A program made the position numbers and the translations under genes. The notes beneath the pieces are model-generated. The model worked only from the letters and a program-made list of their open reading frames with translations. It made no database searches and was not told the DNA's origin. A stretch of 63,495 nt of DNA, filler included, from Ministeria vibrans ATCC 50519 (Eukaryota; Protista; Filasterea): NCBI GenBank assembly GCA_943704425.1. It is 4 parts of 4 records of this genome, joined end to end, with 100 filler letters (N's around TTAATTAATTAA, not from the genome) between each part and the next. Parts side by side here need not be neighbours in the genome. Positions count along the whole stretch, not along the records: positions 23,239 to 54,033 come from CALSCP010000043.1; 3 more parts are not named here. One strand, written 5' to 3'. Within the stretch, counting starts at the first letter, position 1. Each line of letters begins with the position of its first letter. Of the stretch, positions 6,848 through 53,795 are shown one piece after another.

Positions 6848-7113
6848 TGAAACGAAAAAGGAAAGAGAGAGAGGGGGCGAGTGGCGAATGCGAAAGCCAA
6901 AGAGAGGATAGTAGTAATACAGTTTTTTTTTGCATTATTATTATTACTCCTCGTAATCAAGAGTATTAGTATTATAATAATAATATAAATAATTATTATT
7001 AATAATAATAATAATAATTAATATTATTCTTATTATTAAAATTAATAATAATAATAAATAATAATTATTATTATTATTAATTTATTATAATATTTTTTTA
7101 TTCATAATACACA

Positions 7114-10100
7114 TTAATGTTCTTCAACGGCTTCGCTTTCGCGTTGAGCGCAAGCAAGGGCCCTTTCTGCGTCGATGGAGACAACAAGACGGCCAATGGA
7201 CTGACCAGAGGTGTCGAGAACGGGCAAGGGTACAGCGTTGAGACGGCCCTGGTGAGCACAGAGGTCGACTTGAGCAGAGCCGATCTCGCGACACTCGCCA
7301 TCGCCTTCGTCGTCGGGTTCACTGACAACGGAGAAGGTGACGGTACCACTGCCCTGCTCGCGCTCGCGAGCCATGTCACACAGAGCCGTCCACTGCCGCG
7401 GAGCAGTGGCCGGCTCGCACGCAATGGTGTGCTCAAAAGCGAAGGGGAGGATGAGCGAGTCGCGCGCAACGGGAAGGGCAGCCGTCTCAAGGAGATCCGG
7501 TGCGACGCCGAGGAGCTGGAAATCGACAAAGAGACGCTTCACTTGGGGGTCTGAGAGGAACGAGGCGTACGGCGCGACGGAGAGGGAGTCAATCGAGAGG
7601 GTCACACTCAGATCTCGAGTGATCGATTGTGTTTCCTTTGGCGGAGGCAGGGTAACTGTGAGGTCGAGGTCGAGGTCGAGGTCAGAATTGTCGGCCGAGG
7701 ATGAGGTCGTCGATTGCGATGGAGGAAGAGAGGGCGATCTTGCACCAGCAGAGTTTGAAGGCTGTGTAACGGTCAGTGGTTTGGAGTTTGTCGAGGGAGG
7801 TACCGGTGCTGCCTTGGCGACAGGTTGTTGCTGTTGTGCTTGAATGTGTTGCCAGTGGAGGGAGACGTCGAGGAGCGCAACAAGTTTGTCGTTGTCGGTG
7901 AGCACATCAAACTGGCCGCGCACATCTCCACGCGAGTAGAGTGGACTAAGTGGGATAGTGGCGACGCCAATGAGAAGATTTGACGCTTGCAATTGGTCGT
8001 CGCGATTGGTGTGATCCTTGTCGACGGCGGTGTCGGTGTTGGTGTCGGTGTCGGTGTCGTTGAAAAGGTATACTTGGAGTGCGCCGGAGCGAAGCCAGGT
8101 GTCGCAGGCGCGGGTGCGCACGAGAGAGAAGGACTTGCGGTCATGGAGGACGGCGGAGACGCGTGCCACCGCAGTGACGGTGTGGGTGGCATGGTCGTCG
8201 TGACCAAGCACTCGGTATATGGCGTAGACGCGCTGGGCATGTGTGGACTGGCCTAGCAGGTCAACGTTGTTGATGGCAATGGAAAGGGTGTCGGTTGTGC
8301 TTGCGTCCGAGAGCGCCAACTCGAGTTCGTTGACGTTACTGTCGGGGTTGACAGAAGAGTCGTCGTGGGTGCGGCGCTCGTTGAAGAGGACGAGTGCCTG
8401 GCCAAGAGGCAGACGCAAGCGGAGGGAGTAGTCGAGCTGACCGAGCATCTGAGCAGCGTCGGACGGATGGGTGAGTACAGCAGTGTAGTCGAGGCGGACG
8501 GCGGCGGGGCGCACGAGAAGCTCAGCAAGGGACACGAGGGCAACGGCAATGCACTCGTGAGCGGCGCCGACGGCCGCGTGCACCTCGATGCGCATGCGGG
8601 CATGCTGAAGATATCTTAGGAAGAAATCGTCGACCGGATCGATCACAAACTCACTGGCAAAGTTGATGGGGACCTGCAAAGAGTCGCGTGTGTCAAATGC
8701 AACGACAGGCGACGTCTGTGTCTCAAAGGCAAAGAAGTCAAAAACGACAAAGAGCGAGCGCACGTCGGATGCGGGAGAGACGTCAAAGCGCACGCACGAA
8801 AGTCGCACATCGACAACGTTGGCACCCCCAGGAATGGGTGGTGTCTCCGTGTGTACTTGTTCAGGTGCAGTGCGCGAGACGGAGCGTGGACCATAGGCGA
8901 CGCTGCGCAGCTGCTGCTCAAGGCGACGGGCACGAGTGCCGCGCATGTCAAGCAGACGGGCCATTTCGGCAAGACGGCGATCGCATTCGGCGGTGGCGGT
9001 GGCGGTGCGCTCGCTGGCAAGACGCGCCTCCTCCTTGCAGCGGGTGGCAATGGACTGTTGGAGTTTGAGCAGACGCTGGGACTGTTCGAGTTCCTGTGCG
9101 GTCTCGGCAAGTTGTGCGCGCAGTAGAGTAACCGTCGAGGAGTCGGCTCGCTGAGTATGAAACGCGGTGGTGGGCTCGAGGAAGTCAAGATGGTGCAAGA
9201 CAGAGCGGACGGGAGCGTCAGGGGCACTCGTACGAATGGCAGAGTTAGGTTGCTCATGATCATGATCATCATGGGTGCTCTCATGTGTGATGTGGCGGTC
9301 AAGTTGACGTTGAAGCGTGCGTTCGCGGTCACGTGCGTCGCTGAGTTCGCGGGTGGTGCGTGCGACGGTGCGACGCGCACTGTCGAGCTGTTCAAGGGTG
9401 CGCTGCCGTTCGTTGAGTTCTGATTTGAGTGCTGTCTCGAGACGCGCCACCTGTGCCTGGAGTGATTCGTGCTGGCGTTCGCTTGCCATTGCGCTGTCTA
9501 CTGCGTGTGCAGGATCGAGGAGTGCCGCCTGTGCCAGTCGTTCGTTTTCTTGCAGCAACAGTCGTTTTTCTTCGTCTGCGTCGCGCACGCGTTCTTCGAG
9601 CTGTGTCACGCGGGAGCGGTCGCGTTCACTGGCGCGCGCCGTGCGTTCAAGTTTGGCGGCGCGCTCGCGTTCCCTGCGTGCCTCATCGTGCACACGTTCG
9701 AGGGATTCGAGGGTTGTCTCGTGCTGTACGCGCATGTCGTCAAGTTCGCGTTCGGTGGCGCGCAGTCGACGCTCGAAGGCCGTTGCGGCGACGTTTCGGT
9801 CGCGCAGTTGTCTCTGGAGGCGGATTACTTCGATGTCGTCGGTGACATTCAAGGCAGCAGTACTGGGCGGCGGCGGAGCAGCGGCGCGTTGTTTGAGTTG
9901 CGCGCGCAGGTGCTTGATTTGTTCGTTTTGCTGTTGCAGTTGAAGGTGCTGCGTCGACAATTGTTGCGTGAGCGTGGCGTTGCGTGTCTCGGCTTCGTTG
10001 AGTTGGCGCAGCGTGTCGTCATACTTGGCTTGTGCAAAGTCCGCTTGTTGTTTTGCAAGGTGCAGCTGACTGTGTAGCTCGCGCGTCTGCGTCTCGTGAC

Positions 10101-24937: not shown

Positions 24938-27567
24938 TTATATAAAGGCTGGAGTGCGGATTTGCCAATCAATCTTGCGCCACACACGAAACATAGTATC
25001 GAGGACCGAGCTCTTGTCGCACAGGCCAACGATTGTCTTGGTCGCATGCTCGACGCCAATGGAGTGGATGGATTGCCAGGGTGTGCGCAGATCGCAGTAG
25101 CGCTTGTGTCTGTGCCGAGTGCGGTGGACCACCTCGAGAGTCGGTAGCCCCATCGCCACATAAAGCAGCACAAAGAACTCGATCTCTCCGCCGCCACGTC
25201 GCACAACCACTGTCTCTTGCGGGTGCGACTCGGTTCGAGTGAGCATGCGGTTGGTGAGAATGACGCGACGACACCGGTGCTATCCGTACCGCAGACGCAC
25301 AAGCCCGTAGAGCGAGTCGGTGAGGGACGTGGAGAAGGACTGCATCTGCCTGAGAGGCACTGCCTTCCAGTCGTAGGAGAAGCGCATGAACATTGTGCAG
25401 CAGTATGCCACACTCGCCGCGTTCGTCTGGTTGAGCTGAAACGGCGTGAAGTAGGTACAGTTGTCGTTCTACACAGAAGACGGATCAGCTGGCCACCAAG
25501 AAAATGGCATACTTACGCTGACTGAGACAGAGCAGGTGTGGAAGTCCACACTAACTGTCCACATGGGAGCGCCGCCGTCGCCACCGAGCACAACCACAGG
25601 CTCACCGTCGGCTCTCTCTACCTGCCGTGCGCGAAGTGTGTCGTCGTCAACGGAGAGCACAACCACAGGCTCACCGTCGGCTCCCTGAGGTGTTTGGTCG
25701 TCGACGGAGAGCACAACCACAGGCTCACCGTCGGCTCTCTCTACCTGCCGTGCGAGAAGTGTGTCGTCGTCGACGGCAAGCCCGCTGCTACACTCGAAGA
25801 GAATGGCATCATAGACTGACTGTCGAGCGGTTGCAAAGGCGTCGTCGTGCGTTCGGTCCAAAGTGTCGGACAGTGACGATGAGCAGTCGGAGCGACGGTC
25901 CACGTCGTCTCTCCTCTCGTTCCCTTCGTCCTCTTCGCCCTCTTCACCCTCTTCAACCCGCTCCTTCTGTTTCTCTTCCTCGGCCCTTCGTTCTGCGAGC
26001 TTTCGCCGCCGCTCCGCACTTCGGACAGCAGAGTCTCTGTACGCCTCGCTCTCGTCGTCCTCGCTGTGCTCTACTGAATCTCCTTCGTCTTCATCCTCGC
26101 TTCCACGAAGAAGATGCTCGTCGGTAAAGAAGCTGGGCGGTAATCGACGCACCCTATCGTCCAGGGCCGAGCCTATTTCCACAACATCTTCTGTCTGAGA
26201 AAGAGAAGGAGAGGACAGGGGAGAGGATGTCGGGGAGGAGGGAGACGGAGGTTTGCGGGAGGTGGATAGTGCGGATGATGTTTGCGGGGCAGGGGACAAG
26301 GGAGGAAGAGGTTTGCGGGAAGTCGATGATGTGGGTGGTGTGGGTGGAGCAGAGGACAAGGGAGACGGAGGCTTGCGGGCGGCCGGTGGTATGGGTGGTG
26401 TGTATGGTGTGTGTGGAGTAGAAACGCTTTTGACTTTGCGCGAGAGCATTTTGCGGGCAGACCGGCGAGGAGGGAGGGTGGAAGTGGGGGTCGTCGCGCC
26501 GGTTTTGATGTGAGCATCCACAGCGACAGAACGAGCAATGTGAGCTGGTGGCGTGGAGTCGACAGGATCACGAGCGAAGGAGTTTCCTGAGCGTGAAGAA
26601 GACGGGGGCAGACAAGTCGATGGCGGCAAGACGGACCGTGAAAGCTCCCGTTCGAGTTTCTGTCGCTTGACGGTGGGTCTCTCGTCGTCGCTCTTCTCGC
26701 TCTTCTCGATCCTGTCGGCTGTAATCATTGTAGTCGTTGTAGTCGTAAGCGTCGACGTCCGGACGTAGAGAACGGCGATGTCGCAGAGAAACCGTGCAGT
26801 GGTGGCAAATCGGTCGTCGATGTCGAGGCGCACTTCAATAGCCGTGTTATGTGTACAGTCGTCCCATTTCACGTACTTAGAAAGACAGACCGAGCCCTTG
26901 TCGTATCTGATTGTAAAGCGGCCATCGTCTGTCTTCTTGTCGGCAACGGTATACTCCGTGGGGCTCTCGCGGTGAAGAATCAGGCGCTCGTTGCCGACGC
27001 GCACATTCGTTGGCCAAACCAAGTGCAGTTCTCTGAAGGCTTCCTCTGTTGATTGTGAGGCCTAGGGAACAAGGAAGGTGGGCAACAGTTGGATGGGGTG
27101 GAGTTTCGTACGCTTCTTCGGCGGAGCGCGTGAGCAGTGGAGCGTGTTTGCGAGTTGTCTTCGTCCGAGTCTGCGACTTCGTCGCATTCTTGCTGCTTCT
27201 CGTCCTGCTTCTCCTCTTCATCCTGTTCATCGTCCTCTTCTTCGTCCGAGTCCTCATCCTCTTCCTGGACCTTCGTACTGTCCATTCTCTCGGCAGGAAC
27301 AAGAAAATCGTTGGGTTGAGCGCGTTTCACTGTCGGTTCAGGCGCCTCGTCCTCCTCAGGCGGCACCATCATCCCCTTGGCATCTTTCGTGAAGTGGTGC
27401 TCGTTGCAGAGGTGCTTGACAAAGTTCTGAGACGTGCGAGGGTGCTTCGTGAGGAGGCCAAAGCGATCCGTTCGGCTCGAACACGGCTCAAGACGGCAGC
27501 GAAATTGCTTGTTTCCCGCCCGGGAGAGTGCTCCTGTCGGTGTGAAGTATGACAGGGGGAGGGCCAT
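24938..27567 (-). CDS. Hypothetical multi-exon protein with an N-terminal BED-like zinc finger and acidic and proline-rich regions
   Basis: FRCRLEPC...TSQNFVKHLCNEHH (C-x4-C...H-x4-H). A phase-0 intron at 27111-27062 joins the 26980..27567 and 25469..27022 ORFs, and there is another intron at 25516-25469. The 3' end is approximate. Confidence 0.55.
25587..25775. repeat. Three imperfect coding direct repeats (ADGEPVVVL units)
   Basis: GAGCACAACCACAGGCTCACCGTCGGCTC occurs three times. Confidence 0.85.
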
Positions 27568-27712
27568 AAGGGTTGAGGGAGCCGTGGGTGGCGAATTGAA
27601 GTGATCTTGGTGAGGGACTTAGGGGAGGAGGTTCAGTCGGGCTGGGCTGATCGAACGACTTTTTTAAAAAAGTAAAAACATTAATCTTTCTCTGTTTCTT
27701 TGTCACAAAAGC

Positions 27713-30700
27713 ATGTCCTCACTACAGGAACGCATTCAAGAGGCTCGGACGTCCCATTCCTTGAACCTGAGGAAGATGGGGCTCAGCTCTCTTCCAGACG
27801 AAATTCTTGTTCTTGCTGACTCTCTACAGGAATTGCTGTTGACAGACAACCCGCTTGGGATGATTCCCGACTGGATTGGACAGTTCAAGAAGCTCAAGGT
27901 ATGGAAAGGGGAGAGAAAGGCCAGGATTTCTCACGAGTCAGCTCGGTTTTTTTTTTCTGTACGAAGCTTCTCGACGTTGGGAATTGCAAGCTCAAGACGC
28001 TCCCGGCAGCCATTTTATGTTTGCGATGGCACCTGGGGGAGATTACTTACAGAAGTAATGAGGGATTCTCGCCGTCTCTCGACAATCTCTGTGCAAGTAA
28101 GAGGAGAACAATTTCAGTCGATGAGTACTAAAACGAAAGGTTTGTCTGTAGAAGGTTTGAGATAGATAGGATGATTGCTTCAATTGATTCTAACTCCTTA
28201 TCTTGCGCTTCTGGGCGTGGCAATGTTGGGCTGCTCAGTTTGTAAGAAGGCATCTTTTTGGACGATTTTGCTAACACTCGCAACTTTGCAGTTTGTAAGA
28301 TGTCAAGAATTGGTGTATATCTGACCCTATTTTCGCTCGATTCGCTGCTCTGTGCTATTTGGTTTAGGGTGTAAGTTTGAAGAATAGATCGAAATGGATG
28401 GTGACTGATTTGGACTGTGATTTGCACTCTTCTTTGCATTGTTTTAGCTCGTAAGTTTGAAAAATAGATCGAAATGGATGGTGACTGACTTGGACTGTGA
28501 TTTGTACTGTTCTTTGCATTGTTTTAGCTGGTAAGTTTGAAGAATAGATCGAAATGGATGGTGACTGATTTGGACTGTGATTTGTACTGTTCTTTGCATT
28601 GTTTTAGCTGGTAAGTTTGAAGAATAGATCGAAATGGATGGTGACTGATTTGGACTGTGATTTGGACTGTTTTTACATTGTTTTAGGGTGTAAGTTTGAA
28701 GAATAGATCGAAATGGATGGTGACTGATTTGGACTGTGATTTGTACTGTTCTTTGTATTGTTTTAGGGTGTAAGTTTGAAGACTAGATCGAAATGGATGG
28801 TGACTGATTTGGACTGTGATTTGGACTCTTCTTTGCATTGTTTTAGCTCGTAAGTTTGAAAAATAAATCGAAATGGATGGTGACTGATTTGGACTGTGAT
28901 TTGGACTCCTTCTTTGCATTGTTTTAGGGGGTAAGTTTGAAGAATAGATCGAAATGGATGGTGACTGATTTGGACTGTGATTTGGACTCCTTCTTTGCAT
29001 TGTTTCAGACGGTAAGTTTGAAGAATAGATCGAAATGGATGGTGACTGATTTGGACTGTGATTTGGACTGTTTTTACATTGTTTTAGGGTGTAAGTTTGA
29101 AGAATAGATCGAAATGGATGGTGACTGATTTGGACTGTGATTTGTACTGTTCTTTGTATTGTTTTAGGGTGTAAGTTTGAAGACTAGATCGAAATGGATG
29201 GTGACTGATTTGGACTGTGATTTGCACTCTTCTTTGCATTGTTTTAGACGGTAAGTTTGAAGAATAGATCGAAATGGATGGTGACTGATTTGGACTGTGA
29301 TTTGCACTCTTCTTTGCATTGTTTTAGACGGTAAGTTTGAAGGATATATCGAAATGGATGGTGACTGATTTGGACTGTGATTTGTACTGTTCTTTGCATT
29401 GTTTTAGACGGTAAGTTTGAAGAATAGATCGAAATGGATGGTGACTGATTTGGACTGTGATTTGGACTCTTCTTTGCATTGATTTAGACGGTAAATTTGA
29501 AGAATAGATTGAAATGGATGGTAACTGATTTGGACTGTGATTTGGACTCTTTCTTGCATTGTTTTAGGGTGTAAGTTTGAAGACTAGATCGAAATGGATG
29601 GTGACTGATTTGAACTGTGATTTTGCATTGATTTAGACGGTAAATTTGAAGAATAGATCGAAATGGATGGTGACTGATTTGGACTGTGATTTGGACTCTT
29701 CTTTGCATTGTTTTAGGGAGTAAGTTTGAAGAATAGATGGAAATGGATGGTGACTGATTTGGACTGTGATTTGGACTGTTCTTTGCATTGTTTTAGCTGG
29801 TAAGTTTGAAGAATAGATCGAAATGGATGGTGACTGATTTGGACTGTGATTTGGACTGTTCTTTGCATTGTTTTAGCTCGTAAGTCTGAAGAATAGATCG
29901 AAATGGATGGTGACTGATTTGGACTGTGATTTGTACTGTTCTTTGCATTGTTTTAATTGTTTTAGGGTGTAAGTTTGAAGAATAGATCGAAATGGATGGT
30001 GACTGATTTGGACTGTGATTTGGACTCCTTCTTTGCATTGTTTCAGACGGTAAGTTTGAAGAATAGATCGAGATGGATGGTGACTGACTTGGACTGTGAT
30101 TTGTACTGTTCTTTGCATTGTTTTAGGCGGTAAGTTTGAAGAATAGATCGAAATGGATGGTGACTGATTTGGACTGTGATTTGTACTGTTCGGTGCATTA
30201 TTTTAGCTGGTAAGTTTGAAGAATAGATCGAAATGGATGGTGACTGATTTGGACTGTGATTTGTACTGTTCTTTGCATTGTTTTAGTTGGTAAGTTTGAA
30301 GAATAGATCGAAATGGATGGTGACTGATTTGGACTGTGATTTGTACTGTTCTTTGCATTGTTTTAGTTGGTAAGTTTGAAGAATAGATCGAAATGGATGG
30401 TGACTGATTTGGACTGTGATTTGCACTCTTCTTTGCATTGTTTTAGCTGGTAAGTTTGAAGAATAGATCGAAATGGATGGTGACTGATTTGGACTGTGAT
30501 TTGTACTGTTCTTTGCATTGTTTTAGCTCGTAAGTTTGAAAAATAGATCGAAATGGATGGTGACTGATTTGGACTGTGATTTGCACTCTTCTTTGCATTG
30601 TTTTAGCCGGTAAGTTTGAAGAATAGATCGAAATGGATGGTGACTGATTTGGACTGTGATTTGTACTGTTCGTTGTATTGTTTTAGCTGGTAAGTTTGAA

Positions 30701-32220
30701 GAATAGATCGAAATGGATGGTGACTGATTTGGACTGTGATTTGTACTCTTCTTTGCATTGTTTTAGCCGGTAAGTTTGAAGAATAGATCGAAATGGATGG
30801 TGACTGATTTGGACTGTGATTTGTACTGTTCGTTGTATTGTTTTAGGGTGTAAGTTTGAAGAATAGATCGAAATGGATGGTGACTGATTTGGACTGTGAT
30901 TTGGACTCTTCTTTGCATTGTTTTAGCTCGTAAGTTTGAAAAATAAATCGAAATGGATGGTGACTGATTTGGACTGTGATTTGTACTGTTCTTTGCATTG
31001 TTTTAGCTCGTAAGTTTGAAGAATAGATCGAAATGGATGGTGACTGATTTGGACTGTGATTTGCACTCTTCTTTGCATTGTTTTAGCTCGTAAGTTTGAA
31101 GAATAGATCGAAATGGATGGTGACTGATTTGGACTGTGATTTGTACTGTTCTTTGCATTGTTTTAGCTGGTAAGTTTGAAGAATAGATCGAAATGGATGG
31201 TGACTGATTTGGAGTGTGATTTGTACTGTTCTTTGCATTGTTTTAGTTGGTAAGTTTGAAGAATAGATCGAAATGGATGGTGACTGATTTGGACTGTGAT
31301 TTGTACTGTTCTTTGCATTGAATTAGATGGTAAGTTTGAAGAATATATCGAAATGGATGGTGACTGATTTGGACTGTGATTTGCACTCTTCTTTGCATTG
31401 TTTTAGTTGGTAAGTTTGAAGAATAGATCGAAATGTATGGTGACTGATTTGGACTGTGATTTGTACTGTTCTTTGCATTGAATTAGATGGTAAGTTTGAA
31501 GAATATATCGAAATGGATGGTGACTGATTTGTACTGTGTTGTACACTCTTCTTGGTGCTCTTTCCATTGTCTTGTGTTAGTTGGTAAGAAATGAGAATAT
31601 TGAGAATTTGTTCGTGACTGATTATAATTTTAGTTGGTAATTGCGTTTTTACATCAAGCCTGTGACTCCCCTGTACCTCGCAGGCCGTGCGCAATGGAAG
31701 TGGGACACACGGGCGTTCTTTCAGCTTCTCGCGGAAGGAGTTCGACAGGAACAACAGCGACTTGAGCAACAGCGACTGGAGCAACATCGATTGGAGCAAC
31801 AGCGATTGGAGCAACAGCGATTGGAGGAAAGAGTGCTTCGTCTCGTTGAGGTACCACGCCATTCCATTAACTCTTCCAAAAATCATCTGTTCTAGGAGAA
31901 CGAAGCCGCGTTGAGTCGGCGACTTCAATTAGAGAGGGTAAGTTTTACTTTTCATTTTCAGTGCGCCCCTTATTGTATTATTTTTCAGGAATTGAACGAC
32001 GCTCAAAAGCTTCTCGAGGTACCTCATCATAGAATCCCTGCCATGTTGTGTTTGAAAATCACATTCCATTTGCACAGTCGGAGCGCCAGGCCAACCATAC
32101 TCACGCAAATCTACTGGAGAACGAGCCACCGCTGGTGACGCTCAGTCGCGCAGCCCATCGACTCGATCAGCTCGTTATGTCCGCCACGGCCGACAGCCTC
32201 GTCAGTGCCGATGTTGCGTC
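27713..32220 (+). CDS. LRR protein with a 45-microexon variable loop and a coiled coil (3' truncated at an N gap)
   Basis: Exons 27713-27898 and 27967-28096 encode LRRs (LNLRKMGLSSLPDEI, LQELLLTDNPLGMIPDWIG, LKLLDVGNCKLKTLPAAI). Then come 45 three-nt exons at 28152-31636, followed by exons 31684-31850, 31896-31937, 31989-32018 and 32078->32220. All introns are GT-AG and the frame is consistent throughout. Confidence 0.82.
28368..31530 (+). repeat. Tandem array of about 40 units of ~80 bp, each a 77-nt GT-AG intron plus a variable 3-nt microexon
   Basis: Unit GTAAGTTTGAAGAATAGATCGAAATGGATGGTGACTGATTTGGACTGTGATTTGTACTGTTCTTTGCATTGTTTTAG + NNN. It contains a donor, a branch-like TGACTGAT, a pyrimidine tract and an acceptor. 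Confidence 0.95.
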
Positions 32221-32226
32221 NNNNNN

Positions 32227-35200
32227 TGCTCCTGCTGCTGCTGCTCCTGCTGCTGCTGTTGTTGTTGTTGCTTACGCACTGACTCGAATGCATCGGGATC
32301 AGACGCACTTGCAGCGGAGGCGGGGCGGGATGTAGTCGGCGCAACAGCAACGGCCACGGGAATGGCATAGACCTGAGTGCCATCGGCAAGCGCCAGATGC
32401 GGCTTGACGCCCTGCGCCTTCATCATAGACGCAGCCATGCTGAGCGCCGACTCACGCTGCGAATCCAGCGACTGTTGTAGCGTTGGCTCGGTGCACTTGT
32501 CAAAAAGATGCCCACCCATGCCACAGTTGCAGCAAAAAGGCTGCCATTCGACATCGTCCACAATGGACAAGTCAATGGACTTGACTGAGGAGTTGTCGTC
32601 GTCGTCTTCGGTTGAGCCGTCAAAGCTCTGGGCGGGTGCCACACGTGAGCCAGCGATCGAGTCTGTCTGCGACGACGACGATCCTGTGCGCGTGAGACGC
32701 TCCGTTCCCAACGACGAACGTCCCATGGCGGGCACTGCGTGGTCGGCGACACTCGAGTCAGGCAACTGCTTCGTCGAACTGTGGTTGTCCTTGGCCTTCT
32801 CAGCCGCGCGCTTTCGACGCTCTCGACGACGCGACGACACAGATCGATTCGAAAGACTGCTCGCCGAGCTCGCGTCGCTGTAGCAACCGGGCGATGGAGG
32901 AGGCAAATCGAATCTACCGTAGGCCACTTCGTCGTCGTTAGCAAAGGCAATGGGCGAAAAGACGCTGGAGGACGAGTCGTTGGGAAGCAGTGCCAATGTG
33001 GAGCGAGCGGGACGTGTTGCGGAACCATTCGAGGGCTGCTCTTGCTGCGAGAGTGGGGTAGACGTGGGAGTGACGGTGGCGGACATGCGTGTCTTCTGTT
33101 GTTGTGGCTGAAGAGTCGACGTCGAGGAAGTGTCCATCTGACCGACGCGCGTGCATATCTTGTCGTCGCCAGTGGGTGTGGAAGTGGCCAACGCCGAAGA
33201 CCCCTCAGCAGAAGTGAGAGGTGATGCCGGAGTGGCATCGGCATCCGTGCTGCTCGAAGGAGGAGCACCAGACGAGAGTGTCTCTACTGTCACGCCCTGA
33301 GACGTTGATGCGCTCACGTTGGGACTCTCCGTTGTCGACTTGTCATTTTGAAGCGTGCTAGTGGCTGTGGTGGTGGTAGCACTCTGGGGGAGCCTCGCCG
33401 CATCGGGAGGTGACAAGACCGCTTCAGCAGTATCCATGCCGGACGCTGCCGCATGCTTGTTCTTCTTCTTCTTTTTCGAACGCTTCTTTCCACCACCTGC
33501 GCCTGACTCTGCTGTGCCACTGGACAAGATGGAGACGGATTCGGGTGCACTGGTTCGACTGCCACTGGCACTTGCTTCGCCCGTGTTGGCATCCGACTCT
33601 GGTGCGGAAACAGCAGCAGGAGGAGTAGAATGCGAAAGGTTTGTAGACCCGGGTGATGTAGCGTTGACGCCAGTCGAGGCAGGCGTGAGTGTCGTTGTGG
33701 ATGCGGTTGCGGGAGCAGCAGAAGCAGCAGTAGCAGCAGTACTAGGAATGGCCGTCGACGTAGTAGTAATAGTAGTAGTAGCAGTGGCGGCAGGAGTCGT
33801 AGAGGCAGTAGTCGAAGTCGTCGCAGCAGACGATTGATTTGCCGCACCTGTGCTACTGGTACTGACGAGCGGAAATGAGCCACGTCGTTGGTTCCAACGA
33901 CGCGTGTAGAGTTCTTCATCGCTGTCACGGTCGGCAGGCGCACGCGACGCAATGTGATTGGCAACAACAAAGACCGTGTCGTCGATGGGCGTGCGAGCGT
34001 CGCCAAGATCGTCGGCGACGGCGGGAAACGAAGAGCCTGAGAGACGGCCGGCGCCGTTGCCGGATATGCGGTAGCGGTAGGGGCGTTTGGAGAGACGACG
34101 CGAGCCGGGCAAGACTGCAAGAGGTGCGGCGCCGCCAACAGAGAGCGATTCGTCGTCGGCATCCTCGCTCTCATCGCCACCGGCTCCACTGTTATTCGCA
34201 GATGTATTAGCCTGAGCAGCCGTAGCAGCGGAAGTAGTTGTGGTAGTGGCGGTCACTGTCACAGGATTGCTACTCAAAACGTTGGGAGTCGTTGAGCTTG
34301 ATACTGTGTCCGAGCTGGCCGCGTCGTCACTAATCTTTTCGGTTGCGTTGCTCTCGTCGAAATCCTCCGTCACATCATCCATACCCGCTTCGTTGGGGAG
34401 AGGAAAAGAGGAGAGAGAGGTGGAAGGTTCGAGTAGGGACCTTCGATAGAGGAGCGCACCGGCAAGCGTGGCAATGGTGAGAGCAAGGCAAACAATGAAG
34501 CGAGGTGAGAGGAACACGTCTGCGGCAATGCTGGAGCGAATGGACGCCTGGAAGGCCATAAGAGGCACTAAAAGACCATTGAGGCGTTCGGCTTGGCCAG
34601 GTGTAATACGCGAGTGGGGGTGGCGCAAGAATCGACCGTACGACTCGATGGTGGGAAGAAGAGCGGCGGCACGATCGACATGCTCGCTTGGCAGCAACGC
34701 ATCGCCCTCGTCGCGCGCATCAACAAGGCGCCGGATCCACACGGCAAGGCGTTCAGTGTTGCGCAGGAGTGAACGAGCGCGTGTGACGCGACTATTTCTC
34801 ACGAGAGCCGTCAAGTCGTCGACGACAGCACCCACCACAGAGGCGCCATTGACAGAGTCGACTGTGACGGCCGCAACGGCGTCCATGACCGCGTACAACG
34901 AATCAATCACCGAGTGACTAGCGCGCACAGCCAGACGACCAAGGGCCATGGACGAGTCATAAGCAAAGGCAACAAGCGAGCCGACTACCGACTCGAGTTG
35001 GTCCTCCGTCAGATTCTCAGCCTCCAGTGCCAGATTCGCCACCATTTCGTGGGGGCGGTGGCTTTCGCCCTCAATTGACACCACCACCTTGTCGACTCTA
35101 TCGCAAAGAATATCAATTAGAATAACAAAAAATTTATAATAATAATATTACTATTAATAAAATTACGTATTTAAGAATAATAACAACACGAAAGTAATAA

Positions 35201-35243
<43 letters not shown>

Positions 35244-36341
35244 TAATTATAATAATAATAATAATAATAAAATAATAAGAACAAAAATAAGAATAAAAAT
35301 AATAATACTAAAATAAAAAATAATAATAATAATAAAATAATAAGAACAATAATAAGAATAAAAAAATAATAATAATTATCATCATTAATAAGAAGAATAT
35401 GATTATTAATCATTCCGAGAAGAAAATAATTATTCTAACAATAATTTCAAAAGCAAAACAACGACAAACGAAAAACGTATCGTCATCTCATCTCACCTGT
35501 AAAAGTAGATGATGCGGTCGACGCCGTTACGCACAACCTTGTAGACAAAGCAATCGTGACCGTAGACGGGTGCGTTGCGCAAGTAGGTAAGTTTGAAGGA
35601 GTCGTCGTTTTGGGGGGGATGCAGTTCGCGATCCGTGAGAAGTGTGTTGGTGAGTTTGATGCCGACCGAGGCAGCAATGTCGCCGTCGTAGAAGCACCGC
35701 ACGTCAAGCAAGTCAAAGTTGACACGGCGACGATAGCCGGACGAAGTGATATGACTGCGTTCGTGTGCGCTCCAACGAGACTTGGTGCAACGCAGGCAAC
35801 CAAGATCGAGCGAACACGCCTGCTCGAGAATGCTAATGTTGCTGGCGCCACCAAAAGCGGCAATGAAGGTGTTGGGGACGTCGGCGGCGTTCCTGTTCAC
35901 CAGCATGCCGCCGTCGTCAATGTCGTCGTCGTCGTCGTCGTCGTCGTGGCTGTCGAGGGCGGGCGCGTAACGAGCAGAATCGGGAATGGTTGGTTTTGGA
36001 TTGGCGCTGGTGGCATTTTCGAGGGACGTTGGGAGGAATCGCGTTGCTACAACCAAGTTGTCGTGGTCAATGTCGGTATAGGCGAGCTCGCGAGAGCCTA
36101 TGGGCAGCGAGGCGGCGCTGAGCAACATGGACGCTCTCTGTGGATGGCGAAAAGGCGACCCAGCGACGCTATTTGGAGGGGACAGCATGCGCGGACGCAA
36201 TGCAAGGAGCGCCAGCGATGCGACAGCGCTCAGAAGAATGCCCCACAGACATTTTGAGCGCCAGGAGCGTTGAATTTTCGCTTGCGGTTTACGACGCTGA
36301 ATGGGCCGTCGCGGCGTCGCAGGCAGCGATCCCTTGGCCAT
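32227..36341 (-). CDS. Hypothetical membrane protein with low-complexity regions and a CCHC zinc knuckle (3' truncated)
   Basis: An AT-rich intron (about 35497-35098) joins the 35493..36470 and 32202..35087 ORFs. There are two hydrophobic segments and the knuckle CCNCGMGGHLFDKC. Confidence 0.6.
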
Positions 36342-41029: not shown

Positions 41030-44074
<3,045 letters not shown>

Positions 44075-44531: not shown

Positions 44532-45593
44532 ATGACTGTGGAAGAGAGCGAGACGGTTCATATCGACGCTCGTCGTTCTCGCGAGACTCCTACCGTGGTT
44601 CTCAGTCGCGACGCGATTCATCTCCATCACAGTCCAGCGGAAAGCGAGCCTGTGACGAGCCTGGGTCGCCTCCGTCGAATAGTACGTCTCGTCCCAGCTC
44701 TCCAAAACGTTCTCGCTCCGACGACTGGTCTTCGCCCTCGTCCTCGAGCGGCTACCAGCGACAACAGCAGCTCTCCAGTGGCCATGTGGAGTCTCAGTCG
44801 CGTAAGCGTGGCGGGGCCCAGTGGAAAGTTGTCGCTCCGCCACCGCTACATGAGCGCGATCGTGACCGTGACCGTGACTATCGTCGTTCTCCACCCCCAC
44901 GCTACGATTCCTACGATGTGTATGGCCGTGATCGTGATCGTGGTCGTGATCGTGACCGTGACCGTGATCGTGATCGTGTTCGTGATCGTGATCGTGACCG
45001 TGACCGTGACCGTGATCGTGACCGTGACCGTGATCGTGATCGTGTTCGTGATCGTGACCGTGAACGCGACCGTGAACGCGACTATGGCTCTCCCCAACAG
45101 CATCAACACGAAGAACAACAACAACAACAACAACAGCAACGTGACAGCCGTGGCTCGTCGCCAGCTCTGTCCCGGCGATACTCAGGTTCGTCGGGGCGCA
45201 TGGCGTCCCCCCCGCCTGCGCCCGTCCCAACACAGGCAGCGTCAACAGGTCGTTCCTCGTTCAGCCTGTTCCGCCGTGATGCACCCCCTCCACCACCACC
45301 ATTGCCGGCAGCATCAGCTATGCCCGCCAAGCCCCCAGGGCCCCCTCCACCTATTCCTTCCCACTACCTCTCCACGCCATCCTCCTCTGCCCCCACTGGT
45401 CCCATCCCTCCCCCAGGCCCTCCTCCTCCTCACCACCCCCCCCCTTCTACCTCCTTGCTCACTGCGACTGTACGTACTATCCCTACCACTACCACCTCTA
45501 CCGCACTCACCCTTACACAACATCAGTCACACCAACAACCGTATCTCTCTCAGCAGCCGCAACAACAGCAGCAACAACAGCAGCAACATACTC

Positions 45594-45678
<85 letters not shown>

Positions 45679-47746: not shown

Positions 47747-48004
47747 AAAATCACAAAAAGAATATGATTGTGTTTCACAATTTTCACAAACACATTGAAC
47801 CAGTTCTCCTGCCTCTGATTCGTGACTTGCTGAGGAGACTGTATCGAGAATCGTCACTTATTTTTTGAAATGGTGATTTGTGATTTCAGTATAAGAATTG
47901 TGCTGCAAAATAAAAACACGATCAGAGTAAGTAGAATATTTTTCACGTCTTAGATGTCTTTGAGTTTTGACGTTTGAACTCTTTAATTTTTTTTTCTTTC
48001 AGTG

Positions 48005-49572
48005 ATGAGACGTTGTGTCGCGACCGTTATCGCCGCATGCTTTGCTGTGCTTGGTATACATGGCGGTGTCTACATTGAAGACGGGCGGCTGACGGACGAG
48101 ATGGGCCGTGCGCGGATGTTTCGCGGTGTCAATGTTGTGTTCAAGCAGTCGCCGTTCATTCCCGACTCACACACGTACAACACAAACACGTCCATGACCG
48201 ACCGCGACATGGCGGACTTGGCTGGCTGGGGCATCAATGTGGTGCGTCTGTTTGTCGCCTGGGTCGCCGTGGAGCCGAGTGCGGGTCGGTACAACGAAAC
48301 GTACTTGAGCGAACTTCGCGCTCTTGTGGATCGCTTTGCCACCTACAACATCTCTGTGATTCTTGATGCACATCAAGATGTAATTGCTCGGAGGTTCTGC
48401 GGCGAAGGTACCGTGTGCTGGCGATGGACCGTATTTTTTGTCATTCGGTCTCAATGCTCTACTCCTTCTTAGGCGCTGCCGACTGGGCCACCGTCCACGA
48501 GAACAACACCGCACACAGCTTTCCGTATCCGCTACCCATTACGTTGGAGCGCGATGCGCACGGTGATCCGCTCATCTCCTCCTGTCTGACGCATCCATTT
48601 GCAACCTACTACTTTGCGTTGGAGACGTGCAAGACCTTCCAGCAGTTGTACGACGCCACGACCGTGCGCGATCGTTTCATTGCTTTCTGGGCAGAAGTTG
48701 CGCGTGTGTTTCGCTCGGCACCCAATGTACTTGGTTACGAGCTCATCAACGAGCCGTGGGTTGGAAACCTGTACGACAAGCCTGAGCTGCTTGTGCCGGG
48801 CGTCGCTGACCGTGACAACCTGGCACCACTCTATGCACTTGTGCACCAAACGCTGCGCACAGTCGACCAGGAGAAGCTTGTCTTCTTCGAGCCGGTGACA
48901 CTTGACGTGACGCCAGCCGGCTTTGCGTCCAATCCCGTTGGCGGCGACGCCTACCGCAATCGAAGCGTCCTGTCGTATCACGTGTACTGTGGCTCAAACA
49001 CACCCACTCGCTATCACTTTGGGTGCGATCTGATTGACGGGGACTTCTTCCTTCAGCGCAAGAGTGACATTGCCCGTTTGGGCGTGGGCGGATTTCTCAC
49101 GGAGTTTGGCTCGCTGTGGGACGCGCCAAACCAACTCGGGGAGTTGAACCACGTCCTGGACTGGTCGGACCGTCTGTACCACAGCGCCACCTACTGGCAA
49201 TTTAAAGAGTACCGCGACTTCACGAACGTAGGGGGAGCCAGCAACGCCTCCTTCTACAATCCCGACGGCACACTGCAGACGCCCAAGGTGCGCGTCCTGA
49301 CGCGCGCCTATGCCTCTGCTGTTGCCGGGGTGCCTACTCGTCATCACTTTGAGGCCCGGACGGGTCGCCTTGAGTTTGAGTATGTGTATGCGGTGGCGGA
49401 TGCAACCACTGTCGTGCGCATGAATGCCCCTCTCTGGTACCCGACGGGCGTCGACGTTGCCATTGTCCCCGAGGGTGCCGCTGTCGCCAATATCGTCAAC
49501 TCAAACACGATCCACATTGTACACAAATGCGCTCTCCATACTCCATTGACTGTCACTGTTCGAGGCAAATAA
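48005..49572 (+). CDS. Secreted GH5 endoglycoceramidase-like glycosidase
   Basis: Signal peptide, FRGVNVVFK, VILDAHQD, FCGEG|AADW, GYELINEP (acid/base) and FLTEFG (nucleophile). Confidence 0.88.
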
Positions 49573-49707
49573 TAAAAATATGTGTGTGTGTGTGTGTTCT
49601 CTATAAAATAGAAGAAGAATACAGGAAAAATCCGACTTGTTCATTAATTTTGATTTTTGATTTTTGATCCAAACTTTTTTATTTTCCTTTTTGTTGTTTG
49701 GTTGGCA

Positions 49708-51652
49708 ATGGACCCCTCGACACCATTTGAGATCAACGACTTTACGAGCGCCTCCGACTGGGAGCGGGCGTCGTTTGCATTTGAGGAAGCTTTGCGCAAA
49801 TGGATGTTGGAAAGTTCATCGTCCACGTCGTCCGCACCACAGACAGCGAACGCGCCGCCAACTGTGGCGGCGGCGGGTGCCGCGTCAAGTGTCCACATCG
49901 TCGGTGCGACCGGCGTCCTCGCAGAGCAAACAGCAATGCTGCAAGAGGCGACGGCGACCATCAGTCTGAACGGCGTCGACTATGTCGCGTCGATCTGGTC
50001 GACGCGACCAGGCGCCGCACGCCCGCCCGTCATCGACAAGGGCCTGCGAGTGCTGCTGCCCCCCTCGTCGCATGCGCCGTCGACCCACTCGTCGGTTCCC
50101 GCCTCGCCCATGTCTCTGTCAACATCCGTGCCCTTTGGCGACGCGTCGGGCGCAGTGCACCCTGCTGCGCTCGTCGACGAGTCGCTCTCGCCCGCCGCCC
50201 TCGACCTGCTTGACCAGTGTGACTTTGTGCCTGGCTCGCATCCGCTCCAGCGATGGTACGGCGTCAAACAGTTTGTTGTGTGCGAACCGCGCGACGACAA
50301 GCGGCGACCGACGCTCGACGACGCCACGGCACTTCTGGGCGCTATGTGTGTCGCTGCGAGCAACATTGGTTGTTCGCTGCCCATGTTTGCTCAGATGCAC
50401 GATCGGAGTTTGCGCCTGTGGTTGGGTCGGTCGAATAATGCGCGGTGCGACATGGTGTTTGAGTCTACCTCACTGCGCTCTCCGCCACCGCGCACGCTCA
50501 GTCATCTCAGTGGCATGCTGGACTTGTTTCGCTCTCGTATGGGCACTCCCGTCGACTGTTACACTGCCAACGACGCGACTGAAGACGTCGGCGCTTCTGA
50601 AGCGGCGCGTGTCGCGGTCGCTGCTCGATTCACCTTTCAGTTAGCGTCCTGGCTCGACACGGACTGGCGCGACGACGATGTGGGTGCGAGCCAGCAATCG
50701 CCGCTCCGACAGGCCCTCGATGCGCCTATTGGACCTCGTAAGGACCCCGTTGAGGCACTCCATCTTGCCACAACCTGGCCGAATTTCCCCGAGGACGCGG
50801 TGCTCGACAACGCTGTCTACAGCGAACTCGATCCGTCGCTCGCGCCCGTTTGGACCCTTCGCGCCATTTTCACGCCGCCCATGGCGGTACACAGCCGTCT
50901 GACAGTGTCTCTCCAACGCTTTGCGCAGTTGTGCACGTGTGCCGACTCAATGAGAAGACTGATGGAGACGGCCACGACCACCGTCGCCACCGAGGGAGCC
51001 ACTGCTGCCGGAGGCACAGGAGCAGGCACAGCCGCGGCTGTGTCAGGGGGTGGGACCACTGCATCAAGCACGTCGTTGCTGTCGTCGGGGGCGCGCAGTG
51101 AGGATGCGAGCGAGGCGCTGGCTCGACTCACGCATGGCAGTGGCGGCAGTGGTCTGTTTCCGCACTACTTTGACCGGTCGGTGCAGCGAGTGCGCCATCT
51201 GGTGACAGCCGGGATGGACCGTGTTGTGAGCATTGTGGACGAGTCTTTGCCGTCGCTGGAATATGTGGACTCGCTGGTTGGTGACATATTCGAGTATGGG
51301 CGTGAAGGGGCGCAAGTGGTGTCGGCCGTGGCAGTGCCCCGCGTCAAGGGAGCGCCACTGGGATCGACCACGTACGCTCTGGGAGCCGCACTTCTTATGG
51401 TGAACCACCGACGGGGTGGCGTGCGTGCAGTTGCGTTGGTATGGACGGCATATGTACGTGCGTTGCGGCGCTGTTGGGAGTCGCTCGTGCGTGTGCCGGG
51501 CAGTGCCAGTGTTGTCAACATGGATCATTCTATTGTGCAGCAGAAGCTGGAGATGCTTAATGCATGCATTGACAGCCAAGGTGCACGTGAAAAACTTAAG
51601 CGACAGCAGCGTGAAAGTGCACGACGCCAACAGGAAGACGACGACGATGATT

Positions 51653-51683
<31 letters not shown>

Positions 51684-52773
51684 GGAGGAGTTTTTTGATG
51701 CGGAAGAAGATCCCAACACGGTCGAGAGCGAGCCCACTGTTGCAGCGGCGGGCGGTGGCATGGTTCCCGAAGGGGTTGTACACAACCATGCGAGTCTGTG
51801 TTTACTGGCAGGAGATCAGACGACGCCGTTGCGTGTGCCGCGCGTGCAGGAAGCGCCTCCGTTGACCGAGGACCAGATGGAGGCTCAGTTGGCTGCGTAT
51901 GCGGCTATGGGCACGACGGGCGAAGCGGCAGCGCTGCGGTCGCGTTTGCAGGCGGCGTCGCTGCTATCTGACATGGAGGCGTTCAAAGCCGCCAATCCGC
52001 TTGGGGTGTTTGCCGATTTTGTGCGTTGGCACTCGCCACGAGACTGGCTGGTGGACCAAGGGCAGGTGAGCGAGCGCATGAGATCGGCCGATGGGCTCTG
52101 GCAGGATGTGTGGGCACGGGCCCACGCCGTTCCCGTGCACCGCCAACGGCCGTTGTTCGACGCCACACGCGAGGCCGAGAAGGCGCTGCACTACCTGGAG
52201 ACCATTGAGCCGGCTGAGTTGGTGCGGCAGCTTCTGCCGAGTGTCGGGGTGTACGCTCTGCAACGGCTGGGCGCGACAGACGCAGCCGCACAGACACGGT
52301 GTGCGGCCCAATCGGTGCAGACGCTTGCCGACGCTCTTGATGGCCTGGGCTATGCGACAGGCATGGGTCAGGAGATGGGGCCTGCGTCCCTTGTGGTGGT
52401 CGAGCCGTTTGAACGGCGTACACTGCCTGCGCTCGCGCACGCTGAGTATGCGGTGCACCTGGTGCGTAGTCTGCGTCACAAGCTTGTGGATGCCGAGAGC
52501 CTGGTGGAGGCATTGCCGTGCGGCGACGAGGTGGCGGTACTCAGCGAACACGACCGCACCACCATAACCGAGATGTTTCGAGCGGGTGAGCCACTGAAGG
52601 AGGGCAGGCGTTCGCGTCTGCACGAACCGGACGCGCGCGAGTACCTCTTGCGTGCTGTCGTGTCGCGCCCATCATCTCGATCGCGACCGTGTCCCCAGCG
52701 AATGTATGTACACATTGGTGACGAGGAGTTTCGTGTCGCGAGTGCTCACTCTCGTGATCCAATTGTAAAATGA
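49708..52773 (+). CDS. RAB3GAP1: Rab3 GTPase-activating protein, catalytic subunit
   Basis: FEINDFTSASDWE, QKLEMLNACI, LLSDMEAFKAANP...DFVRWHSPRDW, LFDATREAEKALHYL and PQRMY. Confidence 0.92.
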
Positions 52774-52832: not shown

Positions 52833-53795
52833 ATGACGTCGTTTAAAGAAGCGCGCGATGCCTTGAGACAGGCTCGCCTTCAGGGAACCCGCGACAGCAG
52901 AGTAATATTCGTTTCGACTTGCCTTTTCTGCGTTTAACCCTCTGCGCTCTGCTCTGGCCTGTAGAACACGTTCAAGCTGGGTCAACTGTTACTAAAGGAG
53001 TATGCTTCGAAGCTTGGTGAGTGGTTTCGTGTCGATATGAGTCGAACACGAAACGATTAATTTTTTTTTTTCTCTCTCTCTCTTTCTCTCGACACGACCT
53101 CCACGGCAGGTGACGAAGTGCACGCGGTGCGGGAACAGGTGGCGATTGCGGCGCTGGACGTGGGGCAGCTTGGCGTGGCGCAGGAGTGTCAGCGTGCGCT
53201 GGCGCGGCAGTTTACGCCTCAGAGCCATCGGGTCAAGCGACTGGCCGGAATGTGTCTGGAGATGCAGGGAAAGCTCGACGAGGCCAACGAGCTGTACACA
53301 ACCATGCTGGCCGAGGATGAGACCGACTCGGAGACCCGCAAGCGTCTGGTGGCCATTGCCAAGGCGCGTGGCGATGCCGCACTCTCCATTTCGCTGTTGT
53401 GCACCCACTGCGACCGATGTCCCACAGACTTTGAGGCATGGTCCGAGCTGGCGTCGCTCTACACTCAGCAACACCTGTACGACCTCGCGGCTAACGCACT
53501 TGAAGAGCTCATTCTGTCGAACCCACTGAACGACCGTGTGCTGACTCGCTACGCCGAAGTGCGCTACACGCAAGGGCAGCACGACCTGGCGCGCCAGTAT
53601 TTCCGTCGAGCCATCGAGCTTAACCAGCACAATGTGCGCGCCCTCTACGGCACCATTCTTGCCTGTGGCTCCAAGGCTGAGTTTGCAGCGGCACGTCGCG
53701 GAGCCGAGAGCGCCCTGCGCGACTCTTTGGCAGCCGCGCGCGCCCCCAACGCCAAACTCGCCGAGTCCATCATGGCCAAGACCAAGAAGGACTAA
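52833..53795 (+). CDS. EMC2: ER membrane protein complex subunit 2 (TPR protein)
   Basis: EQVAIAALD, FTPQSHRVKRL, EAWSELASLY, LEELILSNP and NVRALYG, with short 5' exons. Confidence 0.85.

Follow-up and report, generated by a model that had tools for sequence, protein, structure and literature searches.

What does an interval encode that looks like a satellite, and in which every repeat unit begins and ends as an intron would? The question is raised by positions 28097–31683 of the window, a 63,495-nucleotide (nt) stretch from the genome of the filasterean Ministeria vibrans ATCC 50519 (GCA_943704425.1), made of four parts of four records joined by filler, the locus lying in the part that comes from CALSCP010000043.1 (positions 23,239 to 54,033). 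The interval interrupts a leucine-rich repeat (LRR) gene, and an original prediction, made from the letters of the window, had parsed it into 46 introns separated by 45 exons of 3 nt, proposing that these microexons are kept or skipped in combination to diversify a receptor. The analysis reported here retains the first of these ideas and largely parts with the second. Very probably the locus belongs to an expressed gene of a lineage-specific family, whose linker is assembled from single-triplet exons set between ordinary introns, with inclusion of the triplets being essentially constitutive.

Single-triplet exons in the genome and in RNA

A regular-expression search for AG-NNN-GT across 28097–31683 returned the 45 array sites and two incidental ones, and confirmed the parse of the original prediction in its coordinates as well as in the order of the triplets. 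Cut at the array sites, the interval splits into 46 GT..AG introns of 47–91 nt each, and the spacer between neighbouring introns is 3 nt long 45 times out of 45. Tandem Repeats Finder (TRF) describes most of it as a period-80 array (28371–31538, 39.6 copies, 92% matches), the core consisting of 39 tandem units of the form GTAAGT...TTTTAG, each with one 3-nt exon and with a modal intron length of 77 nt. The periodicity of this core is a simple consequence of the repeat, and chance chains of four to five AG-NNN-GT sites are present elsewhere in the same piece; what chance does not give is the confinement of entropy to the triplet and the recurrence of the layout in diverged paralogs. When the 39 core units are aligned, the three triplet columns have entropies of 1.88, 1.45 and 1.41 bits, while intron columns stay at about 0–0.5 bit nearly throughout, with two columns at 1.1–1.6 bits. 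Introns 1–4 and the last two have mutually unrelated sequences, yet the 3-nt spacing is kept at all six junctions of these non-repetitive flanks (28152, 28239, 28292 and 28368 upstream, 31581 and 31634 downstream). The branch-like CTAAC/CTGAC sites attributed to such end introns were recovered in introns 2 and 3 (CTAAC) and 4 (CTGAC), intron 1 offering only CTAAA; the donor of intron 2 is weak (GTTTGA).

Of the eight sequencing runs that a search returned, four were mapped on 27600–32200: X1 (organism A, 2011), X6 (organism A, 2022), and X2 and X3 (both organism B, 2025). The RNA-derived material consists of assembled contigs of three of these runs, from two studies, with 30 nt displayed per loose end. 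Run X6 covers 27 of 30 bins of the intronic repeat and has no splice joints, and is therefore taken as DNA. X1–X3 carry GT..AG joints at the three conventional introns further downstream, drop to almost zero depth across most of the array, and present fully and partly spliced forms side by side; on account of these joints, of the loss of depth over the array and of the mixture of spliced forms they are treated as RNA.

The triplets themselves are found joined in these contigs. In X2, a 62-nt loose end precedes position 31683, and its displayed 30 nt match the series that starts with the end of triplet 35 and takes in most of triplet 45 (30/30); the 26 nt preceding 29567 in the same run are triplets 10–18 of the window gene (26/26, by script check). 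Triplet runs of paralogs are likewise present, 30/30 nt for C915, 26/26 nt for C73, and 18 nt followed by the next exon for C2647, and a close paralog is represented by RNA contigs in which AAG directly follows exon 2 and microexon 3 directly follows microexon 2. The 30-mer made of the last ten triplets has no occurrence in the 29.7-Mb genome with up to two mismatches allowed. Since the concatenated triplets are in the contigs and the string is absent from the genome, the triplets are spliced 3-nt exons. This supports the reading of the spacers as genuine microexons, as opposed to pieces of a simple satellite, and of each repeat unit as an intron recognised singly.

The same contigs speak to how the microexons are used. 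All ten triplet strings mapped in X1–X3 are unbroken consecutive series in genomic order, and single unbranched contigs extend 62, 92 and 105 nt beyond their aligned parts (the first 30 nt being displayed). A direct join of 28096 to 31684, the outcome named in the original prediction as telling against it, does not occur among the joints listed for these contigs; the sole joint leaving 28096 goes to 29567 (X3), with the letters between them unresolved. It is therefore improbable that each triplet is independently kept or skipped, so that one gene would yield a large library of linkers, and the include-or-skip scheme finds no support in this evidence: abundant skipping would break a 31-mer assembly graph into short pieces. 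What speaks for such a scheme is that all units have competent splice sites and that any subset of triplets keeps the frame; the partly spliced forms would then reflect slow processing of the array in no fixed order, and contigs hide rare variants. The mapped strings (ten of ten in genomic order), the unbranched contigs and the lack of a listed direct join point instead to a triplet inclusion that is essentially constitutive.

Retention of the repeat, also named beforehand as an adverse outcome, is seen in part, unit 20 and introns 2 and 4 being kept in some contigs. X2 has spliced triplets just before 29567, and both X2 and X3 have a joint starting from 29640, so that a contig must read 29567–29640 unspliced between spliced runs; an X1 contig covers 29527–29640 unspliced. 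These coordinates indicate that unit 20 is retained between spliced triplet runs. It is the only unit with an 11-nt deletion, and its retention puts in-frame stops into the transcript, for which reason the window copy may be poorly productive. Other contigs keep intron 2 or intron 4 while the neighbouring introns are gone, a pattern that fits unit-by-unit intron definition with an order of removal that is not fixed.

Gene layout, linker and protein

The proposed mechanism can be followed along the gene, whose features are as follows:

27713–27899, plus strand: exon 1, encoding the LRR N-terminus from an ATG at 27713; open frame, ending in phase 0
27900–27966, plus strand: conventional 67-nt GT..AG intron; X2/X3 loose ends at 27898 and 27964 carry neighbouring-exon sequence
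27967–28096, plus strand: exon 2, second LRR; ends in phase 1, base 28096 being the first base of a split codon
28097–28370, plus strand: non-repetitive introns 1–4 (55, 84, 50 and 73 nt) with microexons 1–4; from the parse, positions kept in paralogs
28152–28154, 28239–28241, 28292–28294 and 28368–28370, plus strand: microexons 1–4, AAG, TTT, TTT and GGT respectively; from the parse
28371–31489, plus strand: core array, introns 5–43 with microexons 5–43; from TRF, the unit table, entropy and RNA contigs
29571–29636, plus strand: unit 20, a 66-nt defective intron with an 11-nt internal deletion; from unit lengths and contig coordinates
31490–31683, plus strand: three terminal introns (91, 50 and 47 nt, the last two non-repetitive); from the parse
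31581–31583 and 31634–31636, plus strand: microexons 44 and 45, both TTG; from the parse
31684–31850, plus strand: exon resuming in phase 1, an R-A-Q-W-K motif and then coiled-coil heptads; from the open frame and RNA contigs
31896–31937 and 31989–32018, plus strand: small exons within 31851–32077
31851–31895, 31938–31988 and 32019–32077, plus strand: conventional introns, with GT..AG joints in X1, X2 and X3 and none in the DNA run X6
32078–32221, plus strand: last exon in the window, cut by an assembly gap (N at 32222–32227)

Each of the 47–91-nt segments would be an ordinary spliceosomal intron with a strong GTAAGT donor, a branch site of the CTGAT/CTAAC type and a TTTTAG acceptor, presumably recognised by intron definition. 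Because every donor lies 3 nt from the preceding acceptor, neighbouring introns would not be engaged together and would be removed stepwise, probably in no fixed order. Once all introns are out, the 45 triplets would be ligated into a 135-nt insert and read in phase 1 as a 45-residue linker, within what is probably the family layout of LRR N-terminus, linker and coiled coil, with a protein kinase added in at least one paralog. The array would have grown by tandem duplication of an intron-plus-triplet unit, starting from an earlier chain, common to all paralogs, of six or more microexons.

Pfam was run exon by exon, only the triplet string having been translated joined, by script. Searched alone, exon 1 scores 18.8 bits against LRR_1, under the cut-off of 20.6, and the LxxLxLxxNxL pattern was seen by eye; RNA contigs cover this exon, exon-2-like letters follow directly after 27898, and paralogs are 85–92% conserved here. 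That the array is entered and left in phase 1 (28096 and 31684), as had been claimed, is borne out by the flanking frames: 27967–28095 is open and translates to 43 amino acids (aa) free of stops, 31686–31850 is equally stop-free, and base 28096 and bases 31684–31685 are left over as the parts of a split codon. The coiled-coil region lies downstream of the linker, and TRF finds a 15-nt repeat in its exon (31684–31850).

Read in phase 1, the 45 triplets of the window give 45 residues without a stop, rich in Gly, Val, Ala, Pro, Asp, Trp and Tyr. Microexons 1–4 spell K-V-F-W in both the window gene and C915, and K-V-Y-W in distant paralogs; at two triplets C915 has TCT where the window has TTT, and both differences fall at third codon positions and are synonymous. 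At the opposite end, microexons 44–45 (TTG TTG) with the next exon give V-V-D followed by R-A-Q-W-K in paralogs, and V-V-G in the window, even though paralogs keeping these end residues are only 56–89% identical in their flanks. Residues conserved at the chain ends, together with the synonymous changes, are a signature of selection on the phase-1 translation, and the conservation of these ends next to unrelated introns implies that a chain of at least six microexons is older than the tandem amplification. Over all arrays, the true frame holds one stop against 4.9 expected when triplet order is shuffled (P=0.0185), whereas the unused phase 2 holds 13 against 13.2 expected. The linkers of the window gene, C1600, C2647 and C73 are rich in Trp adjoining Gly (GW/WG-type motifs) and in acidic residues, a composition that recalls Argonaute-hook or other aromatic-glycine low-complexity regions, in resemblance only.

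In the close paralog C2121, the homologue of the last exon runs on for some 545 aa and reaches a protein kinase domain (Pkinase, 4.6e-12), and the kinase is demonstrated in this paralog only; a search with its C-terminal 545 aa gave no homologues outside this genome at 1e-5. The window copy lacks the kinase part, possibly owing to scaffolding. Past the gap at 32222–32227 lies a different gene, a 961-aa open reading frame (ORF) on the minus strand (32202–35087) with a CCHC-like motif. A GxxxxGKT (Walker-A-like) motif was seen by eye in the ORF of the distant paralog C173, in which Pfam found neither a Roc nor a COR domain, and the family is therefore not filed as ROCO.

Several observations weigh against this account of an expressed, translated and constitutively spliced array. 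The RNA nature of X1–X3 is a guess of the search tool and a deduction from their behaviour and is not on record, and the data are at the level of contigs, with 30 nt per loose end and no molecule seen to span the complete series of 45. Such material would not reveal rare isoforms, and low-level skipping may occur, although nothing in the contigs supports it. The form retaining intron 20, with its stops, is present at appreciable contig depth. As for the protein, translation of the insert is deduced from sequence, the depletion of stops is of only moderate significance, and the lone in-frame stop among the arrays is a TGA in the phase-1 triplet string of C312. Finally, the window gene itself is truncated by the assembly gap at 32222.

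The gene family and the origin of the arrays

The gene belongs to a family that could be traced through the genome (29.7 Mb in 2860 contigs). A two-unit query gave 130 matches, all in tandem arrays on few contigs and all (130/130) in arrays of this gene family, and exon 2 gave 13 matches. Arrays occupy the same gene position in at least eight contigs, after an exon ending ...CTCTGTGCAA and before an exon beginning ACCGCGCGCAATGGAAG or a close variant, and every parsed array combines a homogeneous intron of 77, 85 or 86 nt with a variable triplet. All 217 spacers in the assembled arrays are 3 nt long; the parser admits only 3-nt spacers, and the chains run unbroken through whole arrays. The most complete copies hold 22 to 45 triplets, many copies being cut by gaps, and intron sequence differs by about 25% between array subfamilies. 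Several arrays are cut short by N gaps or by the end of a contig, and thus evidently break assemblies. The genome-wide scan for chained sites recommended by the original prediction gave, for two chained AG-NNN-GTRAG sites, 351 matches against 272 in the reversed control, the excess coming from the family arrays and the other hits being of low complexity, among the matches listed.

Individual copies show further peculiarities. Within 3620–4460 of C2647 the array breaks off with an N gap and an incomplete unit and then passes abruptly into a coding repeat (ADGEPVVVL...) that has its homologue in the ORF at 25469–27022, upstream in the window, which is either a misassembly or a rearrangement at the array; a second apparent chain in this contig, of 54-nt period, was rejected as the coding repeat of another gene. 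Contig C73 carries a 77-nt-unit array at 4600–7252 and, at 1–620, the start of a second family gene with an 85-nt unit, which suggests that the family is partly clustered. On the reverse strand of C312 (about 1900–2000), one unit has a GC donor in place of GT (TTG|GCAAGA), and with its in-frame TGA this copy may be a pseudogene.

The two moieties of the repeat unit evolve very differently. Among core units of the window the mean pairwise difference per site is 0.042 for the intron and 0.60–0.65 for the triplet, and groups of five and of four units have identical 77-nt introns flanked by different triplets; over eight arrays the triplets are 16–89 times more diverse per site than the introns. 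In C1049 the contrast is extreme, the 86-nt introns being 0.8% divergent and the adjoining 3 nt 70%. Repeat introns of the window, C73, C915 and C2647 differ at 2.7 positions within arrays and 3.3 between them, whereas the unique introns and exons of these four genes differ by 8–16%; the intron moiety is therefore homogenised within as well as between arrays. Some multi-unit blocks have been duplicated together with their triplets, and triplets are shared between nearest-neighbour introns at about twice the rate seen for random pairs.

Uniform mutation cannot produce the contrast seen in C1049. Candidate explanations are a process sparing the triplet, a process targeting it, or selection on the peptide acting together with short-tract conversion among the introns. 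A more far-reaching idea, to be held as tentative and rather doubtful, is that the arrays are a germline device for codon-by-codon diversification, by which LRR-kinase paralogs gain linker codons far faster than neutrality would allow. Such a device could work through homogenisation of the intron alone, templated by excised intron RNA or through short-tract conversion halting at the heterologous triplet, or else through mutation directed at the 3 nt that separate acceptor and donor, and it might be topped by somatic variety through low-level skipping. The diversity that is visible is germline-encoded and lies between paralogs, in the number and content of their triplets, not in splicing.

The homogeneity of the introns also invites the thought of a burst of mobile, introner-like introns, young elements inserted between the old codons of an ordinary exon. 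Such a history would accommodate introns that differ by about 4% within arrays and among the four genes, next to triplets differing by about 60% and unique flanks by 8–16%. It is nevertheless very unlikely, since the unit is confined to the arrays of one gene family, with none in unrelated genes among the matches listed, and the test for target-site duplication gave no signature (the triplets on the two sides are identical for 28 of 203 introns, where 21 are expected, P=0.06). Moreover, filling every codon boundary without leaving a single exon of 6 or 9 nt is implausible, and the identical multi-unit blocks show triplets duplicated along with their introns.

Alternatively, the product might be the introns themselves, either as excised RNA or through the delay imposed by 46 serial splicings, the 3-nt exons then acting as minimal frame-keeping spacers. 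Conserved introns with variable exons are indeed found in the SNORD115/116 host genes (PMC11608373), and here partly spliced intermediates are abundant enough to assemble. Rfam, however, has no match in 27600–32200 at E<=1, and one unit has no folding advantage over shuffled sequence (z=-0.26), so that an intron-encoded structured RNA was set aside. With intron sequence some 25% different between array subfamilies and with the ends of the triplet chain conserved as protein, an intron factory or splicing timer is very unlikely. A 19-nt unit core had no exact matches in metagenome contigs.

Least credible of all, and rejected, is an intronic satellite, an 80-nt repeat in a single 3.6-kb intron removed whole with accidental AG-NNN-GT sites, which the plain tandem repeat reported by TRF and the four- to five-site chance chains elsewhere might suggest, but which is contradicted by RNA contigs that hold concatenated triplets and no direct join, by the 3-nt spacing kept in non-repeat flanking introns and in paralogs, and by a variability confined to the triplet.

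Relation to known systems and neighbouring genes

A full-text literature search for arrays of 3-nt or consecutive microexons and for tandem introns found no run of single-codon exons, dozens long, derived from a duplicated intron, in agreement with the statement of the original prediction that no such array was known; snoRNA host genes with tandem introns were among what it returned. The array has been filed as an extreme variant of the micro-exon gene (MEG) theme, working by ordinary intron-definition splicing. Schistosome MEGs contain short symmetrical exons, of a stated range of 3–81 bp and mostly of 6–36 nt, that are alternatively spliced and make up most of a small secreted protein, their introns being long (up to 5 kb) and unrelated (PMC10526429, PMC10399815). 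Both systems build coding sequence from serial very short exons, and in MEGs the encoded segments are variable and disordered and belong to a multigene family. Unlike in MEGs, the exons of the array are all 3 nt long, its introns (47–91 nt) are tandemly duplicated, its product is a linker within an LRR/coiled-coil protein that in one paralog extends to a kinase, and the triplets seem to be included constitutively; no homology to MEGs was seen in the sequence.

Other parallels concern the splicing of extremely short exons. Drosophila ratchet points, at which recursive splicing passes through a zero-nucleotide exon within very long introns (bioRxiv 10.1101/006163; PMC6110457; PMC8605326), share with the array an acceptor adjoining a donor and the removal of a long interval in successive steps; the array, in contrast, leaves 3 coding nt per step, as seen in RNA, and its segments are already short, complete introns. 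Single 3-nt microexons are known in animals from cytohesin-1 (PMC6314551) and MAP4K5 (PMC8632122), and PICALM was also found, while RPS24 has three consecutive microexons of 3, 18 and 22 bp (PMC12207440). In these genes, too, a 3-nt exon is recognised and one residue is added in frame, although animal 3-nt microexons are isolated and usually regulated cassettes in long introns, and the 45 consecutive microexons of the array compare with three in RPS24, the longest run found in the literature outside micro-exon genes; the layout of the array, moreover, is repeated in at least 13 paralogs.

With respect to its introns, the array may be set beside introners or introner-like elements, which in Micromonas, Aureococcus and fungi are near-identical introns spread across unrelated genes and bearing transposon hallmarks. 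Many near-identical spliceosomal introns in one genome are common to both, whereas the array unit sits at one homologous position of one family. With respect to gene type, the array may be compared with the LRR/ROCO genes of brown algae, in which the shuffled module is reportedly a whole LRR exon; in the array a single codon together with an intron forms the module, and what it encodes is a linker placed after the LRRs. These fast-evolving algal genes reshuffle a repeated exon–intron module in the germline (PMC3341825, PMC11378527), and a germline-reshuffled exon–intron module within an LRR family is what the two systems share.

If this reading is correct, a spliceosome is able to join 45 consecutive exons of 3 nt into 135 nt of coding sequence, and the array would provide a natural substrate for studying the use, order and speed of acceptor/donor pairs 3 nt apart, with unit 20 as a natural mutant. 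Gene predictors and RNA sequencing (RNA-seq) aligners cannot place 3-nt exons, so that such genes would be misannotated as containing one repeat-filled intron. The opposition of homogenised introns and hypervariable triplets could in addition reveal that a putative sensor-kinase family undergoes a new form of concerted evolution or is diversified in a targeted way.

Unlike the LRR gene, most of its neighbours are long genes with few introns. Among them is an intronless 1038-aa ORF (49657–52773) with a Rab3 GTPase-activating catalytic domain (Pfam 8e-48), for which a search of 5.8 billion clustered proteins gave no match at 1e-10; the genome seems to be without close sequenced relatives. To either side of this ORF lie a GH5-type glycoside hydrolase gene (48002–49572), for which the nearest protein-atlas clusters are predominantly bacterial, and an EMC2-like TPR gene (53118–53795). 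Long microsatellites are also present, (ATA) with about 90 copies at 35136–35399, (TC) with about 93 copies at 42955–43141, and (CAA) with about 40 copies at 45560–45678.

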